From Phaeosaccion multiseriatum (Eukaryota; Protista; Ochrophyta, other classes): a stretch of DNA of 64,000 nt. The stretch lies in contig OZ218961.1 in the NCBI GenBank assembly GCA_965112735.1, forward strand, positions 2,790,001 to 2,854,000, written 5' to 3'. Numbering within the stretch: position 1 is the stretch's first letter; each line of letters begins with the position of its first letter. This document shows positions 23,170 to 33,911 of this stretch, in pieces. The translations under genes were made by a program, and so were the position numbers. The notes beneath the pieces were generated by a model. The model worked only from the letters and a program-made list of their open reading frames with translations, searched no databases and had not been told where the DNA came from.

Positions 23170-26100
23170 ATGACGCGACGCCGGTGCCGTTATCGTCCCG
23201 GAGCTCCAGCTGCTTTGGGGTACGTCCTCTTGCTAAGTGCAGGCGGCGACTATGGCAGTGGCAAGAGTGGTGCCGGAGTTGGAGTGGGCGCTCTTCGCGT
23301 GCCCCTCCCCTCTATCGATGGTATGCTCGAGGGCCTCAAGAGGCGGGAACGGAGGGCAGAGACCAAGCGAGTGGCGCGGCAGTGGGGCACGCCTGCCAGC
23401 CCCACATGGACGCCTGCTCACGTCGATCTCGGCAGCGAGGCGCTTGGACCTCAAGGAATGAGGCCGAAGGAGCCCACGCCCAACCACCCGCTCTTCCAGC
23501 GCGATCGGAAGGTCACGCTACGCAACATTGCGAAGCGGGCCAGAGAGGTAAGAGGTGACCCCCCTGAGACGGACGAGAGGAGATACGGGATGTATATCAG
23601 AGTATCAAGACAAAGAACGGGCGGAGCCTTGCCTCCTTCACCATATCGAGATTGGCTAGCTGGTCTTGCCCACCCCCCACAACGTACTTCCCCCTTCCCC
23701 CACCCCTCCCCAAACGCAAAGGTGGGCTTGTTTCGCAAGCCAGGCAACGAAAGTGCGTACGGCCCTGTGCGAAGGCGACGGGGGGTCTACAAGGACAGGC
23801 TGCCCTACGCCACAGGCGAGCGGAAGGACAATGAAATGGGCAAGGTTGTGGACAGTATCACTCGGCACGAGCGGCCCTTGCTAACGCTGACGGCTCTTCT
23901 GCTCCTCTCTTCCGCTGCGGTGGACGTGACTCTCCCTTACACCGTCACTCTTGCTCTAGACGGTACGTGAGGGGAAGGGGGGGCGGAGGGGGGTACTCAG
24001 TGAGAAATGGTTAAGAATGGGATCACGTAATTAGTCTCGTGGGGTTGGGAACACGAACGAAAGCAATACAGTCTGTCATCTCTACTTGTGTACCGACCAC
24101 TCAATCCCTCCTTCCACACCCCACCCCCCCGGCCTTCCTCCGTCCTTCCTCCGTCCTTCCTCCGGCCGCTCTCTCTCTCCCTCTCTCCCTCTTCTCTCTC
24201 GGTGTGCTCCTCTCTCCATCTCAGCGGCGTCTCCGGAGGTGGAGCAACAGGCGATGGGTATGGTTATCAAGCTCCTTGCCACAGTTGGCTCCCTCTCGGC
24301 GCTCTTTACTGGGGCCCGTCTGCTGTGCGCAAAGCTGCTGGCTTCGCGGATCGTGACCCGCGTCCGGAGCGAGCTGTTTGCAGCCCTTGTGAGTCTCGAT
24401 CAGACCTTTTTCGACACTACCGCCTCCGGAGAGCTTGTGAGTCGACTCGGGTTGGATACAGAGAAGCTCAGGAGAGTATTGAGTGACACGCTTCCCTCCC
24501 TCGTCTACCACGGCGTCCACATTGGCGGTTTGTTGGCAGTGATAGCACGCTCCCACGCGCAGTTTGCCTTCTTGCCGTATGCGTACTGTGTGCTCCACTT
24601 CCTGGTGTGTGGGCGGTGGTACGGGCGATTTCAGCGAGACATGAGCATTGCTGCACACGACCACATGGCCACTAGCGCAGCCGAGGCAGACAACACCTTC
24701 CGATTCATGCCGGAGGTGAGGGCGCAGGCGGGGCAGAAGCAGGCGCTGAATCGCTACAACCGAGAGCTCCGAAAGGCGCTCAGCTTCCAAGAGGCGCACG
24801 ACTGGGGCAGCAGTGCCTACAAGGCGATTTCAGTGGTGCTGGCGGTAGGGCTCCAGGCGTCGGTGGCAGTCTACGGCTCCCGTATGGTGCGAAGCGGCAA
24901 GGTGACCTTTGGTAGCTTCGGATCGCTCTTCTTGTACACCACCAAGCTGGTGCAGAGCTGTAACGTCATGGGAGAGAGGTACTTGGAGATGAAGAGCGCG
25001 GCAGGAGCCACGAGGGAGGTGTTTGCCCTCAGTGGCCTCGACCCCGGCATGCGAGTGCGCCCCTTGGGTGAGAGCATTGAGCATTGGCGAAGGTCTGGCG
25101 GTGGGAAGCAGCAGCTCTCTGCCGGAAGTAGCAGCAGTAGTAGCAGCAGTAGGAGCAGTAGTAGTATTGGAGGGATGAGCTCGGCTATGCCGGGCAGCGC
25201 GCGCGACCGGAGGAAGGGGCCGGCCATCGTGTTTGAGAACGTTGTCTTGTCGTACAGCAGAGACGGGCAGCAAGACGCCTTCGACGCCTACAAGCGGAGA
25301 GTGAGGAACGAGGCCCTTGCCGCTTCAGCTGCTACTCGACGAGCGGCATCATCAGTGTCCGGTGGAGAAGGGCAGCAGCTGCAGCAGCAGCAGGAGGAGG
25401 AGCAAGAGGAGGAGGAGCAAAGCCACGCACGGAGGGGGCACAGCGACGGAGAGCAGCTCAGAGGGCTGACTCTCAACGTGCCGCCCGGGGAACGTGTGGT
25501 GCTCGTCGGAGAGGCAGGGTCAGGCAAGTCCACCATTTTGCGAGCGTTGGCAAGGTGGTACGATCCGGAGGAGGGAGCAGTGTCCATTGGAGGGAGGGAT
25601 GTGCGCTCCTTTGAGAACGGAGAGCTTGCTTGCGAGATGGCGATGGTGAGTGAATGAGTGGAAGAAGGGAGGGAGGGACGGAGGGACGGAGGGAGGGAGG
25701 GAGGGAGGGAGTAAGTAGGTGGGGGAGAGAGTGACGGAGTGACTGAGTGAGGGTGAGGGCGTGAATGAGTGATTGAGTGAAAGAGTGAGTGGTTTTATCG
25801 CCCCACTCGAGTATATCCTACTCTCTATATACTCAATCAATCGTACGTACAACCAACAGGTCACACAGGAGACGGCCTTGCTCCCAATGTCAGTGGCGGA
25901 CAACATCTACTGCGGCCTGGCGAATGTGCTGGAGAGGGAGGAGGAGGGGGCGGAGGGGGGGGGGGGGGTTGCCACGATTGGGCAGGGGGGAGCAGGGGTC
26001 GGGCTTGGAGGAGAGGCACAGAGGATGGCAGAGCTGATAGCACAGCAGCTTGATAAGGCGGAGGAGGGGGTTGGAACAAGAGTAAGAGGCGACGACGAGG

Positions 26101-26389
26101 AGGAGGAGGAAGAGGGCAATGAGGAGGAGGAGGAGGAGGAGGACGATCTCCACTTGGCGCTGCAGGAGTCAAAGGCCGTGTTGGATGCATCGTGGCGGAA
26201 GAAGGAGGCAAAGATGGAGGCACGACGACGAAAGAAGCGACGACTTGTGGAAGCAGCGGCCAAGGCGGTGGGGGCGCACGACTTCATCGTGAACCTCCCA
26301 CAGGGCTATGACACAATGGTCGCAGAAACGGCCTCCTGTGTCGCCCCCTCCGAAGCTGTAGTCACCCCCTGGAGCAGCAGCAGCAGTAG

Positions 26390-26438
<49 letters not shown>

Positions 26439-26699
26439 GACAGTAGCAGCAGTGACAGTAACAGCAGTGACGGTAGCAATGAAGGGAGAGAGGGACACAC
26501 ACAGGGCCTGTCGCTGGGACAGAAGCAGCGCATCGCCCTCGCTCGGGCCTTGATCGTGGAGCCTGCGGTGCTACTCCTTGATGACCCGTGCTCCGCCCTT
26601 GACAACGCGAGCAGGGCGGAGGTGATGGCCGCCGTTGACGAGTAAGTACCGGACTTGGTTTCTCTCGTCCTGTCTGCCCCTCGACCCTCCCGCGCCTGC

Positions 26700-29177: not shown

Positions 29178-29870
29178 ATGGACAGGCTGGAGGGCACTGT
29201 GAGCATCTGTAGAACCGTCCAGGCCACCTTGGGAAGGAGGACGAGAAGGAGTAGAAAGAGGCCGAGGGCAGTGGAGGGGGCTGGCCGACTCCGACGCTCG
29301 TCACTATGGAGCGGGTTCGCTCTCGTCTCCACGTCCTTGCTGCTGCTGAGCCCGAGCAGCTGTAGCAGTAGTAGCGCGACCAATGACGTGCAGAGGTCCC
29401 CTTATACTTCGCCCATGCTCCCAGGCGCCAGCAGTGGCGGTCGGGGGGAGGGCGGGACGGCAACGACAACGAGAGACCCACCCATCGACTGCAGTACCAG
29501 AGATGGCGGCGTCTCTCCACGCCCGCCGTTGAAGCCTGCGACGATGGACTTCTTCCGAAGCATCGACGGCAACAACGACGGAGTGCTCGAGCCCAGTGAG
29601 CTGCGAGACTTTGTGGCCCACGACGTGGGTGGTGTGAACCTGGATGAGAAGCTCGAGGTGGACGCTGGCGTGAGCATGATGCAGCAGCACTTGGACACCG
29701 ACCTCGACCAGTCTATCACGCTCAAGGTAGGTTAGCTTCTTGGTCTCCACTCACATCTGCTTTTCTTTTCCGTCTCACAGTATGTTACACGTGTAGCACC
29801 TACGTGACCCCCATTCCTCCTTGCTGCGCTTCTCACTGCCACCACTATTGCTGCTACTCTTCTTCATCTG

Positions 29871-29911
<41 letters not shown>

Positions 29912-30201
29912 CCTACTCCTCCTACTACTACCGCTACCACTTGCAGGATATGGCCCAGTGGGCCAGTAAAGTGGGTAGCGTGGTGAACGTGGCTGAGGCA
30001 GCGCGTTGGGCCGTATACGGGGTGCTCGTGCCTGCGAGTCTTCAAGAAGCGCAGCGATGCGATGCGGAGGTCGGGGCGGCGTTTCGCATGAACGGAATCT
30101 CCGGTTTTGACTTTCCAGAGCTAATTGGGAACGGGGGAGAGAAGCTGTACTATGATTACGGCATTACGCGGCCCGCCAGTCGGAGGCGTATCGTTAGGGT
30201 A

Positions 30202-30248
<47 letters not shown>

Positions 30249-32659
30249 CGTGAACATGGCTCACGCAGAAACTCATGTAACGTACAGTTGATCATTCCCT
30301 GCCCCCGTTCATTGCACTACCCCTTGTGGTTTGCCCCGCCCACAGGCGATCCAAATTAAGCTGGCGGGCATCGGGACGGAGCCCTCCACCCCCGTCGCTC
30401 AGGCGGATCCGACGTCATCCAATCACATACGCACCTCGTGGGATGTGCCAGAGTCGCTCAACGCCGCCACTGGACGGGGAAGCAACCCTTTCCCCACTCA
30501 CACCTTTGTGCTGGAGCGGAAAGTGCTGCCACCCTCGCTATACGAGGGAACGGGAGCAGGCGGAGGCGGAGGCCTCGGAGGGGGGGTGGTAGGGCGGGTG
30601 GATGAGAGCGGTGGTGGTGGTGGTGGTGCCGGCGCTGGTGATGGGGGAACGGAGGATTGGGATGCCATTTACGTGGGCCCTGCCGGACATTTTATCGACA
30701 AGGACGTGGAGGAAGGTATCATGTACTACTACAGAGTGGAGGTGAGTGAGTTAGTAAGGGAGGGAGGGAGTTATTGAGTGGATGAGTGAATGAGTGTGTT
30801 TGTGTGTGTGAGTGAGTGAGTGAGTGAGTGTATGGGCGGGCGAGTGAGTGAGTGAATGAGTGAATGAGCATGTGAGTGAGTGAGTTGCGTGAGTTAGTGA
30901 GGGAGTTAGTGAGGGAGGGAGGGAGGGAGGGAGGGAGGGAGGGAGGGAGTGCGTGCGAGCGTGAGTGAGGGATGGAGTGTGTGGCTGCGACTGACTACTC
31001 ACCGTGCTCCCTCATCCTTGCTCTCTGTCTTCTCACCCCGTCTGTGCCTGCTCTCGCGTGTTGTGGCAGGCGTGGAACATCATCGGTCATAGCGACTACG
31101 TGTATTTCAACGCTCAGCTTCCGAACCCATCACACACCAGCAACAGCAGTAGCGGTGGCGTGGATCTCCGCTCTTCGTGGGAGGATGAAGCGCCAGTGCT
31201 CGGCGCCGCCACCTCCCCCCCTGGCAGTCATTTCCTCTCCTTTTGGCGACCACAGAGGTCGTCTGACTACTGGATGAGGAGCGAAGGGAGCATTCTGCAT
31301 GGCGGTGATGGGGACGGAGAGGGAGAGTACATACGTCGTGGGGGGGGGGGCGGCAGGGGAGATGGTAGCAGCCGTGTCTACATTGATCTTCAAGCTGCCT
31401 TCGATCTCTTATGGAGTGTGATCAAGATTGCGGGAGTAGCCTTGGTGCTCCTGTACTCGGTCTACGAGACGATGAAGGTGAGGAAGCTGAGGGAAAGATA
31501 CAGCCGCGGAAGAGACAGCTTCGGGATTGGGATTCCTGACTCTCCGGGAGATTTCTCTCCCCGCGGGGGAGGTGCTTATTACGCTAGTGGCATGGACGCT
31601 GCTGGGTTTCCTTCCGCTTCGGGGGACAGCATCCTTGTGTCTCAGACTCAGCAACAGCAGCAGCAGCAGCAGCAGCAGCACCAGCAGCGGTTGGAGCGAA
31701 TGGGGTCTTTTTATGGCGGCATGCCCTTCCTGGGAGGAGGAGGAGGAGGAGGAGGAGGAGGAGGAGGAGGAGGCGATGATGTGTATGGTCCCCACCCCCA
31801 CTCGCAGTCGTCCCAGCTGCTCGCATTTGGTGCGGCAGGCCTCCCACCAGGCTTGGGCGTGAGTGAGCGGCTGGCACTTGCTCAGGAGGGCGGCGGGGGC
31901 AGCAGGAGTACCCGCGGCAGCTTGGACGGTAGCAGCAAGGATGGTGGTACTCCGTATCTTCATGCGGGGAAGGATCCTCACATAGGTCACCACCACATGA
32001 TGCCGCTTCTGCGACAAGGGGGCGAAGTGGGGGAGCCCTCTGGCGGCAGCAGACTTTTGAGAGGAGGGGAGGATGCCCCAAAGTCCGGCTTATTTCGACG
32101 GAGGCGGAGAGCTTCTATGCAAAGCGCTGATGCAGCGGCAACGTCGTTTGACCTGGCCACAATTCCTGACGATGCCAGCGTACAGGATCCTGGGCCACCC
32201 CGCGGACGGGGTGGAGCGGTCGAAGGATGGGAGCCGAGCGACGCAATGGATCCGTTGGGCTCCTCTCTTTCTTCTGGTTCTGCTTCTGCTTTTGGTTCTT
32301 CCTCCTCGTCTTCTCATTCGAGCAAATGCTTCAGCTGTCTGAAAACCTTCCGCCACTTCAAGCGCAAGGCTCACACATGCCGGAGCTGCGGGAGCCGCTT
32401 TTGTCAAAAGTGTGGCTTTACGTGCCACACCTCCTGGTCCAAGTGCAGAGGGCTGTGCCTGTGTGGGGTGTGCGCCGAGCAGGGACTGACTGTACTCGCT
32501 TCGGCGGAGCACCAGGAGCACCAGCAGCAGCCGCTGCCGGACCAGCAACAGGACCAGCAGCAGAGGCTTCTGCGCCTTCGGCGAGTGAGTAGCGACAGCC
32601 TCGGAACGTCACCAGAGCCCGCGTCTGCTCGTCATTGGGACGATTTGAGCATCAACTGA
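29178..32659 (+). CDS. STIM-like membrane protein: signal/anchor - EF-hand pair - SAM - FN3 - TM - low-complexity linker - FYVE-like zinc finger
   Basis: Exons 29178-29726, 29947-30198, 30346-30741 and 31070-32659 join in frame. EF loop DGNNDGVLEPSE; second loop DTDLDQSITLK|D; SAM VAEAARWAVYGVLVP...AFRMNGISGFDFPEL...GITRPASRRRIVR; FN3 IRTSWDVP...YYYRVE|AWNIIGHS; TM LLWSVIKIAGVALVLLYSVY; CxxC..RKAHTCRSCG..FCQKC..CGVC. Confidence 0.8.
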
Positions 32660-32926: not shown

Positions 32927-33515
32927 TGAGTGATTGGGTGGGTGGGTGGGTGGGTGAGTGCGTGAGTGAGTGAGAGAGTGCGTGCGTGCGTGCGTGAGTG
33001 AGTGAGTGAGTGAGTGAGTGAGTGAGTGAGTGAGTGAGTGAGTGAGTGAGTTAGTTAGTTAGTGAGTAAGTGAGTGAGTGAGTGAGTCAGTGAGTGAGTG
33101 AGTGAGTGAGTGAGTGAGTGAGTGAGTGAGAGAGTGAGTGAGTGAGTGAGTGAGTGAGTGAGTGAGTGAGTGAGTGAGTGAGTGAGTGAGTGAGTGAGTG
33201 AGTGAGTGAGTGAGTGAGTGAGTGAGTGAGTGAGTGAGTGAGTGAGTGAGTGAGTGAGTGAGTGAGTGAGTGAGTGAGTGAGTGAGTGAGTGAGTGAGTG
33301 AGTGAGTGAGTGAGTGAGTGAGTGAGTGAGTGAGTGAGTGAGTGAGTGAGTGAGTGAGTGAGTGAGTGAGTGAGTGAGTGAGTGAGTGAGTGAGTGAGTG
33401 AGTGAGTGAGTGAGTGAGTGAGTGAGTGAGTGAGTGAGTGAGTGAGTGAGTGAGTGAGTGAGTGAGTGAGTGAGTGAGTGGTGAGTGAGTGAGTGAGTGA
33501 GTGAGTGAGTGAGTG
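32927..33515. repeat. Long intergenic (TGAG)n microsatellite (~0.55-0.6 kb)
   Basis: Directly visible; nearly perfect from about 32995. Confidence 0.98.
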
Positions 33516-33911
33516 ATCAGGTTGGCGGAATCTCCACACATTTATTTTTTTAAACCGTAACCGCAACTGCATTCTGAAAACCCTCAAGGGCAAGTGTCAG
33601 CATCTTGGTGTCAGGGTTGGATGTCCCAAAACATGTACGACAACAATAAAGCAAAAAAGCCAGATGCTGCACCTGACGTGCAGGCACAGAGAATAAAAAG
33701 ATTTGCTTTGATTCTAAGCCATATGTCGCGTGTAAGAAACCAACCACGACAGAACAAACAGCAAAGGAGAAAGAAGGAAAAGGAGCACCACCGTGCCCTC
33801 TTGTGGTCACCTAGAGCGTCTCTATCGGAGAGGAGGACAGTTATTTCTCTTCAGTTGAACCACCACAATTAAGTGGGTTGCGTAAGGGATCTTGGAAGCG
33901 AGTGTGGTACA

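Follow-up and report, generated by a model that had tools for sequence, protein, structure and literature searches.

The gene at positions 29178-32659 (+ strand) of the 64,000-nucleotide window analysed here (Phaeosaccion multiseriatum assembly GCA_965112735.1, contig OZ218961.1, positions 2,790,001 to 2,854,000) is predicted to encode a membrane protein of 928 amino acids (aa), whose presumably luminal unit is supported by sequence profiles and predicted fold as a STIM-type EF-SAM, and not as a generic EF hand joined to a generic SAM domain. The unit is followed by an FN3 domain, a single transmembrane helix, a low-complexity tail and a C-terminal FYVE-type zinc finger. We propose, with a probability of about one half, that this is a type I membrane protein in which the EF-SAM unit senses a fall in Ca2+ and clustering passes the signal to the cytosolic finger. 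The EF-SAM unit of STIM is compact while Ca2+ is bound, and loss of Ca2+ leads to its partial unfolding and self-association. To our knowledge, this association switch upon Ca2+ loss is the only job known for an EF-SAM unit.

The link to STIM is visible only with a profile of the protein family and not with single sequences. Searches of the PDB with exon 2 or with the EF region alone returned only chance matches or generic EF hands, and with a profile of the whole EF-SAM unit calmodulin-type proteins crowded out the others. Because calmodulin-type proteins swamped the whole profile, a SAM-only profile was cut, consisting of 30 sequences with exon 2 of the window as the first row and including neither EF loop. 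The first three PDB entries matched by this profile were the EF-SAM structures of STIM1 (2k60, E 4.6e-7), Caenorhabditis elegans STIM (6pw7, E 9.9e-7) and STIM2 (2l5y, E 1.4e-6), while the best non-STIM SAM domain, that of SAMD5 (E 1.3e-3), was about 1000-fold behind. The alignment to STIM extended into the helix preceding the SAM domain. In the HMMER alignment of the family profile to 2k60, which runs through EDLWKAWK..., TVDEVVQWLITYVELPQ, FRKLQLSGHAMPRL and MTDRSHRQKL, the register was identical to that of the by-eye alignment with STIM1 on which the initial annotation of this locus had based its comparison. The loop that follows the first helix of the SAM domain also carries a 10-aa insert in the window, ASLQEAQRCD (aa 210-219, 30025-30054), which is absent from all 25 relatives.

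As the EF-SAM unit of the window is split over three exons, a relative was folded in its place, namely residues 51-211 of P0005 (relatives are denoted here by P numbers), the closest full-length relative, which is 43% and 47% identical to the two pieces of the window. The model, built from a 27-row family alignment with no templates, was one compact nine-helix domain with a predicted local distance difference test score (pLDDT) of 91.7 and a predicted template modelling (TM) score of 0.84, in which the SAM domain is packed on the EF pair as a single EF-SAM unit, as in STIM. In the Foldseek search of the PDB, 6pw7, 2l5y and 2k60 occupied ranks 1-3, with TM scores of 0.63-0.73 over 149-154 columns; from rank 4 onward the TM score was at most 0.46, with root-mean-square deviations above 8 Å for whole-length alignments. 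In the ESM Atlas shape search with the same model, chordate STIM2 and STIM1 clusters scored 0.76-0.77, behind an oomycete cluster that is described below, and everything else was at or below 0.55. The initial annotation had made the STIM likeness depend on whether generic SAM or calmodulin folds would be the best hits; by SAM-only profile and by fold, it was the STIM EF-SAM structures that came first.

Convergence or a modelling artefact, in which an ordinary EF pair lies beside an ordinary SAM domain and AlphaFold recalls the packing of STIM, appears to us a very improbable source of this resemblance. It would agree with the identity to STIM of only 14-21%, with the calmodulin-type proteins standing first for the whole EF-SAM profile, and with the Pfam family EF-hand_STIM1 (PF25578) being matched by only 5 of 27 members, below its cut-off. 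However, the lead of the three STIM entries over other SAM domains was obtained with a profile holding no EF loops, the high-confidence model came from the family's own alignment without templates, and the order and spacing of the EF pair and the SAM domain are invariant in all 25 relatives.

Both EF loops of the unit are canonical in sequence. The first, D130-E141 (29565-29600, +), reads DGNNDGVLEPSE, with D1, N3, D5, G6 and E12, and its ligands (D1, D/N3, D/N5, G6, E12) are kept in 24-25 of the 25 relatives in the family alignment. The second, D173-D184, reads DTDLDQSITLKD and spans the joint of exons 1 and 2, D173-K183 lying at 29694-29726 (+) and the last residue being the first codon of exon 2. 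Across the family this loop has D1 in 24, D/N3 in 22 and D5 in 23 of the 25 relatives, a hydrophobic residue at position 8 in all of them, and Asp (19) or Glu (6) at position 12. Pfam matches to EF-hand_5, EF-hand_7, EF-hand_1 and EF-hand_6 were found at aa 124-182 of the window protein, all below their cut-offs. Judged from the alignment, the predicted Ca2+ ligands are conserved in both EF loops of the family, and a canonical Ca2+-binding EF hand in the luminal part is shared with STIM. The second EF hand pairs with the first in the P0005 model, yet it is canonical in sequence and does not correspond to the hidden, non-canonical hand of STIM. That it keeps its acidic ligands had been remarked on for the single locus, and it now holds for the family as a whole.

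An exhaustive phmmer search with exon 2 alone against 1.84 billion representative proteins (E up to 0.001) gave 32 matches, with a best E of 3.7e-12 and a best identity of 53%; one of them, P0011, is a repeat protein without any other part of the architecture. In the long matches the same Pfam order recurred, namely an EF pair, SAM (SAM_2 passing in many), fn3, a transmembrane helix and a C-terminal FYVE finger. The members whose source is named belong to the ochrophytes Phaeothamnion confervicola, Chrysoparadoxa australica and Tribonema gayanum and to the haptophyte Pavlovales sp. CCMP2436, and are labelled only "unnamed" or "hypothetical"; further relatives come from MMETSP transcriptomes. 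Two more word-index searches found few relatives, none with the name of an oomycete, diatom or brown alga, and a word-index search with the exon 4 open reading frame (ORF) found none, poly-Q and poly-G words filling the candidate list. In the ESM Atlas, a 70-member oomycete cluster was nearest to the EF-SAM model by shape (TM score 0.79), and the same cluster was nearest to full-length P0015 by features (0.95, 204/256). Its proteins, of about 565 aa and automatically named "Calmodulin", contain fn3 and SAM domains, and these shape and feature matches make oomycete membership a strong lead. We regard these proteins as a conserved, previously unnamed family of ochrophytes and a haptophyte and, probably, of oomycetes.

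Some relatives depart from the common architecture. Two tandem EF-SAM-FN3 units occur in P0007 (aa 73-231 and 369-526) and in P0023 (aa 114-269 and 357-511), the latter having an additional FN3 domain upstream of the first unit. P0019 has no finger, and the start of a kinase domain follows its EF-SAM-FN3 part (aa 538-591, Pkinase E 7.3e-5, below cut-off). This kinase-like end hints at an alternative output, and the protein may be cut by the end of its contig.

An FN3 domain of some 130 aa separates the SAM domain from the transmembrane helix, whereas in STIM the helix comes directly after the SAM domain. Pfam fn3 was above its cut-off at the aligned position in P0023 (61 bits) and P0026 (27.3 bits), and the conserved FN3 Trp and the pattern Y.YRV.AWN..G.S were found in the sequence designated A4. 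The single transmembrane helix (aa 512-531, 31406..31465, +) has six Lys/Arg in the 15 residues after it vs one before it. When the window protein and 15 relatives were compared, 14 of these 16 had more Lys/Arg following the helix than preceding it, which fits a cytosolic tail. Near the N-terminus, a hydrophobic segment (aa 43-58, 29304-29351, +) with a core of 12-14 residues is preceded by a basic stretch and followed by small polar residues, and classical signal-like segments occur at the N-termini of relatives P0008, P0015 and P0017. A Cys-rich zinc finger needs the reducing cytosol. The signal-like N-termini, the positive-inside helix and the cytosolic-type finger fit a type I layout, with the EF-SAM-FN3 part in the lumen or outside the cell. 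As far as such sequence signs go, this topology would fit the endoplasmic reticulum (ER) and the cell surface alike.

Between the helix and the finger lies a low-complexity, presumably cytosolic tail (31466..32326, +) of 285 aa, rich in Gly (20.5%) and Ser (13.8%), with poly-Q and poly-G runs and no recognised domain; among relatives this tail ranges from 80 to 319 aa and is unconserved in sequence. No Pfam match to SOAR (PF16533) was obtained in exon 4 of the window at E up to 1, a search made with no dedicated coiled-coil predictor, and some 30 relatives, searched at E up to 0.01, gave none either. The features of the window and the Pfam matches of its relatives bear out the order described in the initial annotation, that is, FN3, one transmembrane helix, a Gly/Gln tail and a FYVE-like finger, and its statement that no SOAR is visible agrees with these searches.

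The finger extends from C819 to C867 (32327..32473, +), with C819, C822, C836, C839, C844, C847, C864 and C867 as its ligands. In the window its scores were below the cut-offs, both for FYVE (PF01363; 13.0 bits vs 27.8, E 0.12) and for FYVE_2 (16.6 bits vs 27.2, E 0.009); in relatives P0006 (29.1 bits) and P0035 (28.9 bits) Pfam FYVE was above its cut-off. The finger is conserved in 25 relatives. In its alignment C8, C11, C25, C28, F32, H41, C53 and C56 are invariant and H23, C33, C47 and C51 nearly so, and the central block reads (K/R)(K/R)H.C..C...FC..(H/C)G. The eight Zn ligand positions have the cross-brace spacing of FYVE domains, and the predicted fold is also that of FYVE; the finger model had a pLDDT of 79.9, and its top matches were all FYVE or FYVE-related, down to row 11 in Foldseek and row 17 in VIA. 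The eight Cys/His in FYVE spacing, the (K/R)(K/R)H.C..C...FC block and a predicted fold that matches FYVE types first are thus what the algal finger shares with the FYVE and FYVE-related fingers of EEA1, Vps27, Hrs and endofin, of melanophilin, rabphilin and RIM, and of CARP2. It differs from these in four extra Cys/His, H834 (32372-32374), H852 (32426-32428), C858 (32444-32446) and C862 (32456-32458), which are invariant or nearly so in 17 aligned members; their conservation suggests that the family has a third metal site of its own.

Protrudin (ZFYVE27) resides in the ER membrane, has its FYVE domain in the cytosol and tethers the ER to late endosomes, and the structure 1x4u, which we take to be that of protrudin, was among the fold matches of the finger. 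Like protrudin, the algal protein is predicted to be membrane-anchored with a FYVE-type finger facing the cytosol, and protrudin provides a precedent for FYVE-mediated contact of two membranes. In contrast, protrudin is without a luminal Ca2+ sensor and has another membrane anchor, and the likeness is claimed for the finger alone.

Since the Ca2+ ligands, the predicted fold and the likely type I layout are all retained in the family, the protein is best read as a switch whose association depends on Ca2+. Bound Ca2+ would keep the algal EF-SAM compact and monomeric, as in STIM. When Ca2+ drops on the EF-SAM side of the membrane, the unit would loosen and the proteins would associate. Clustering across the membrane would then raise the avidity of weakly binding cytosolic fingers for their target, which might be a phosphoinositide membrane, a small GTPase or another protein. 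Given the FN3 spacer and the floppy tail, a rigid relay of conformation is improbable, so that clustering is the simplest output. This output has a parallel in the polybasic end of STIM and in many FYVE domains, which need multimerisation. We infer the compartment, and with it store sensing, as well as the Ca2+-dependent association and the target of the finger.

The comparison with STIM1 and STIM2 of animals and choanoflagellates delimits how far the likeness goes. Both would have a type I layout, the N-terminus of the algal protein being signal-like, and both have one transmembrane helix and a SAM domain on which an EF pair is packed; the profile and fold matches of the algal EF-SAM are specific to the STIM structures 2k60, 2l5y and 6pw7. 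In STIM the last SAM helix plugs the EF cleft, and the algal proteins have hydrophobic residues where they align with this helix. By analogy, the finger might be compared with the polybasic tail of STIM, as a far C-terminal element binding a membrane or a partner. In contrast, the second EF loop is canonical in the algal family (D1, D/N3, D5, D/E12) and a hidden, non-binding one in STIM, and FN3 separates the SAM domain from the membrane. The algal protein also has neither CC1-CC3/SOAR nor a polybasic tail, but a disordered, unconserved tail with a FYVE-type finger at its end. The range of the family, stramenopiles and a haptophyte, lies beyond that reported for STIM (PMC7016017, PMC11085791). 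The algal protein is therefore STIM-like in its sensor but is not a STIM by membership, having no SOAR, no hidden hand and an inserted FN3 domain.

Several points weigh against store sensing with output through the finger. The EF-SAM model was made for relative P0005 and not for the protein of the window, and the STIM structures were among those on which AlphaFold2 was trained. As both EF loops are canonical, the unit might also bind Ca2+ too tightly to act as a store sensor. The public sequencing runs containing the locus are four, all of them DNA contigs of one sample in which the introns are covered and there are no splice joints. The hydrophobic N-terminal segment of the window protein begins only at aa 43. 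As regards the finger, the window and all 16 aligned relatives are without a WxxD ahead of the first CxxC, no RVC precedes the last Cys pair, where all members have C-x-C-x-x-C (CLCGVC in the window), and the basic motif of the window is degenerate, K-A-H-T-C-R (KRKAHTCRSC vs RRHHCRxC). The R(R/K)HHCR motif is complete in P0007 only (RRHHCRHC), whereas in most members (K/R)HHC is present and the last Arg is missing. With this incomplete signature for phosphatidylinositol 3-phosphate (PI3P), binding of PI3P is doubtful and is not expected with any confidence. Of the lipid- or protein-binding finger put forward in the initial annotation, the FYVE-type fold is supported and lipid binding is doubtful, two of the three PI3P motifs being absent; "FYVE-like" is right as a fold, and a protein partner is as likely as a lipid.

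FN3 is mostly an extracellular domain, so that the cell surface is as compatible with the protein as the ER. The main rival to a store sensor is accordingly a cell-surface receptor or adhesion-type protein, in which the EF-SAM and FN3 domains would lie outside the cell, Ca2+ would be merely structural, as in SPARC, and the finger would serve endocytic sorting or Rab binding, with no store sensing. We hold this to be possible, though not probable. Besides the FN3 domain, the tandem EF-SAM-FN3 units of P0007 and P0023 resemble modular ectodomains, weak SPARC_Ca_bdg matches occur in 6 of 27 members, and the top structural match of the finger is the FYVE-related, Rab27-binding finger of melanophilin, a match that also makes lipid binding less certain. 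An ER-retention signal was not noticed either, although no search aimed at one was made. On the other hand, the EF-SAM packing is known, in all solved examples, from a Ca2+-loss switch, and sea water (about 10 mM Ca2+) would never empty the site, yet both loops are canonical in marine and freshwater members alike. Neither of these two arguments is decisive.

The relation of the family to Orai was considered in the light of the literature. A comparative study of 2020 placed the origin of STIM around the base of animals and regarded its SAM domain as a recruitment in the animal lineage (PMC7016017), and a 2024 survey of stramenopile channels found Orai in brown algae and diatoms (PMC11085791). 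In Phytophthora infestans and Saprolegnia, neither Orai nor STIM was detectable according to a 2022 review (PMC9694693). Reviews state that diatoms and oomycetes have yielded no STIM, and that the several algal groups keeping Orai "must also have an associated Ca2+ sensor" (PMC11085791, PMC9694693). In the literature consulted we found no report joining EF-SAM to FYVE, or a STIM-like algal protein with Orai; an earlier mention may exist. The system may or may not be "non-Orai", as the initial annotation suggested. Brown algae, diatoms and Emiliania are reported to have Orai (PMC11085791, PMC7016017); in the two oomycetes, whose group appears to have the family on Atlas evidence, Orai is reported as undetected (PMC9694693).

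The presence of Orai without STIM in brown algae, diatoms and Emiliania, where another sensor is expected (PMC11085791; PMC7016017), leads to the idea that the family is the missing partner of algal Orai, that is, a functional counterpart of STIM whose tail or finger, in place of a SOAR coiled coil, would bring Orai to junctions of the ER with the plasma membrane or gate it there. The family does provide a STIM-type sensor in ochrophytes and a haptophyte. However, there is no SOAR match in the window or in about 30 relatives, the tail is unconserved except for the finger, and, according to the Atlas, the family seemingly occurs in oomycetes, where Orai is reported as undetected (PMC9694693). 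We therefore consider direct service to Orai unlikely.

Regarding the gene itself, the locus consists of four exons on the + strand, all joined by GT-AG introns in phase 0, which give the spliced open frame of 928 aa; the four exons and all the parts listed in the initial annotation are present. Exon 1 (29178..29726, aa 1-183) contains the start codon, a basic N-region, the hydrophobic segment, EF loop 1 and residues 1-11 of EF loop 2. Exon 2 (29947..30198, aa 184-267) begins with D184, position 12 of EF loop 2, and continues with the exiting helix and the greater part of the SAM domain. Exon 3 (30346..30741, aa 268-399) encodes the last SAM helix (AIQIKLAGIG) and most of FN3, with a Gly-rich insert (about aa 335-368). 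Exon 4 (31070..32659) opens with the last FN3 strand (31070..31117, AWNIIGHSDYVYF) and continues through the transmembrane helix, the tail and the finger to a C-terminal extension and stop (32474..32659, with TGA at 32657-32659).

The spliced luminal part matched a family hidden Markov model built without the rows of the window at E 1.2e-51, in a single stretch spanning the exon 1/2 and 2/3 joints, and single relatives (P0017, P0006, P0021 and P0032) aligned to it without interruption over all three joints. Conserved motifs span the joints (marked by a colon where they fall within the motif), namely ...L-x-x-x-D-x-x-x-x-W, ...R-K-x-I-x-R:x-I-x-x-R-L-x-G-x-G and Y-R-V-Q:A-W-N-x-x-G, the exon 3/4 joint being crossed by YRV(E/Q):AWN.IGHSD as in relatives. 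The whole architecture is found in one ORF in complete transcripts of relatives (Tribonema TRINITY and an MMETSP transcript). From these alignments with relatives, the gene of the window is judged to be intact and a single four-exon gene. A pseudogene or mis-joined gene was ruled out by the open frame, the canonical splice sites and the motifs conserved over every joint.

The introns are mostly microsatellite at 29854-29946, 30197-30253 and 30740-30983, with (CTA)n-type, (GA)n and (GTGA)n/(GGGA)n repeats, and the Logan contigs of all four DNA runs end precisely at these microsatellites. Single-base deletions in the coding exons at 30580, 31215 and 32198, the first two in G/C homopolymers, occur in run X4 only; as the other three runs of the same sample match the window, they look like sequencing errors and not frameshift alleles. 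A (GTGA)n array at 32930-33600, just 3' of the gene, yields spurious minus-strand ORFs reading LTHSLTHS.... The upstream neighbour (24086-26645, +) is an ABC transporter (ABC_membrane, 8.4e-26) with at least one intron, since its ABC_tran match is split over two ORFs, and has no evident link to the STIM-like gene.

The findings extend the EF-SAM module outside Holozoa and indicate that SOAR is not the only output to which such a sensor can be coupled: in this family it is combined with a FYVE-type finger, and one relative has a kinase-like C-terminus. Tentatively, the EF-SAM store sensor might be older than animals, and stramenopiles and haptophytes might have wired the module to another output, in which case it could be their long-missing store sensor. 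If this is true, the family would either use its finger to drive Ca2+-dependent membrane contacts or be coupled, by a new mechanism, to the algal Orai that is kept without a known STIM. For the puzzle of Orai without STIM, this family of ochrophytes, a haptophyte and probably oomycetes offers a concrete, testable candidate.

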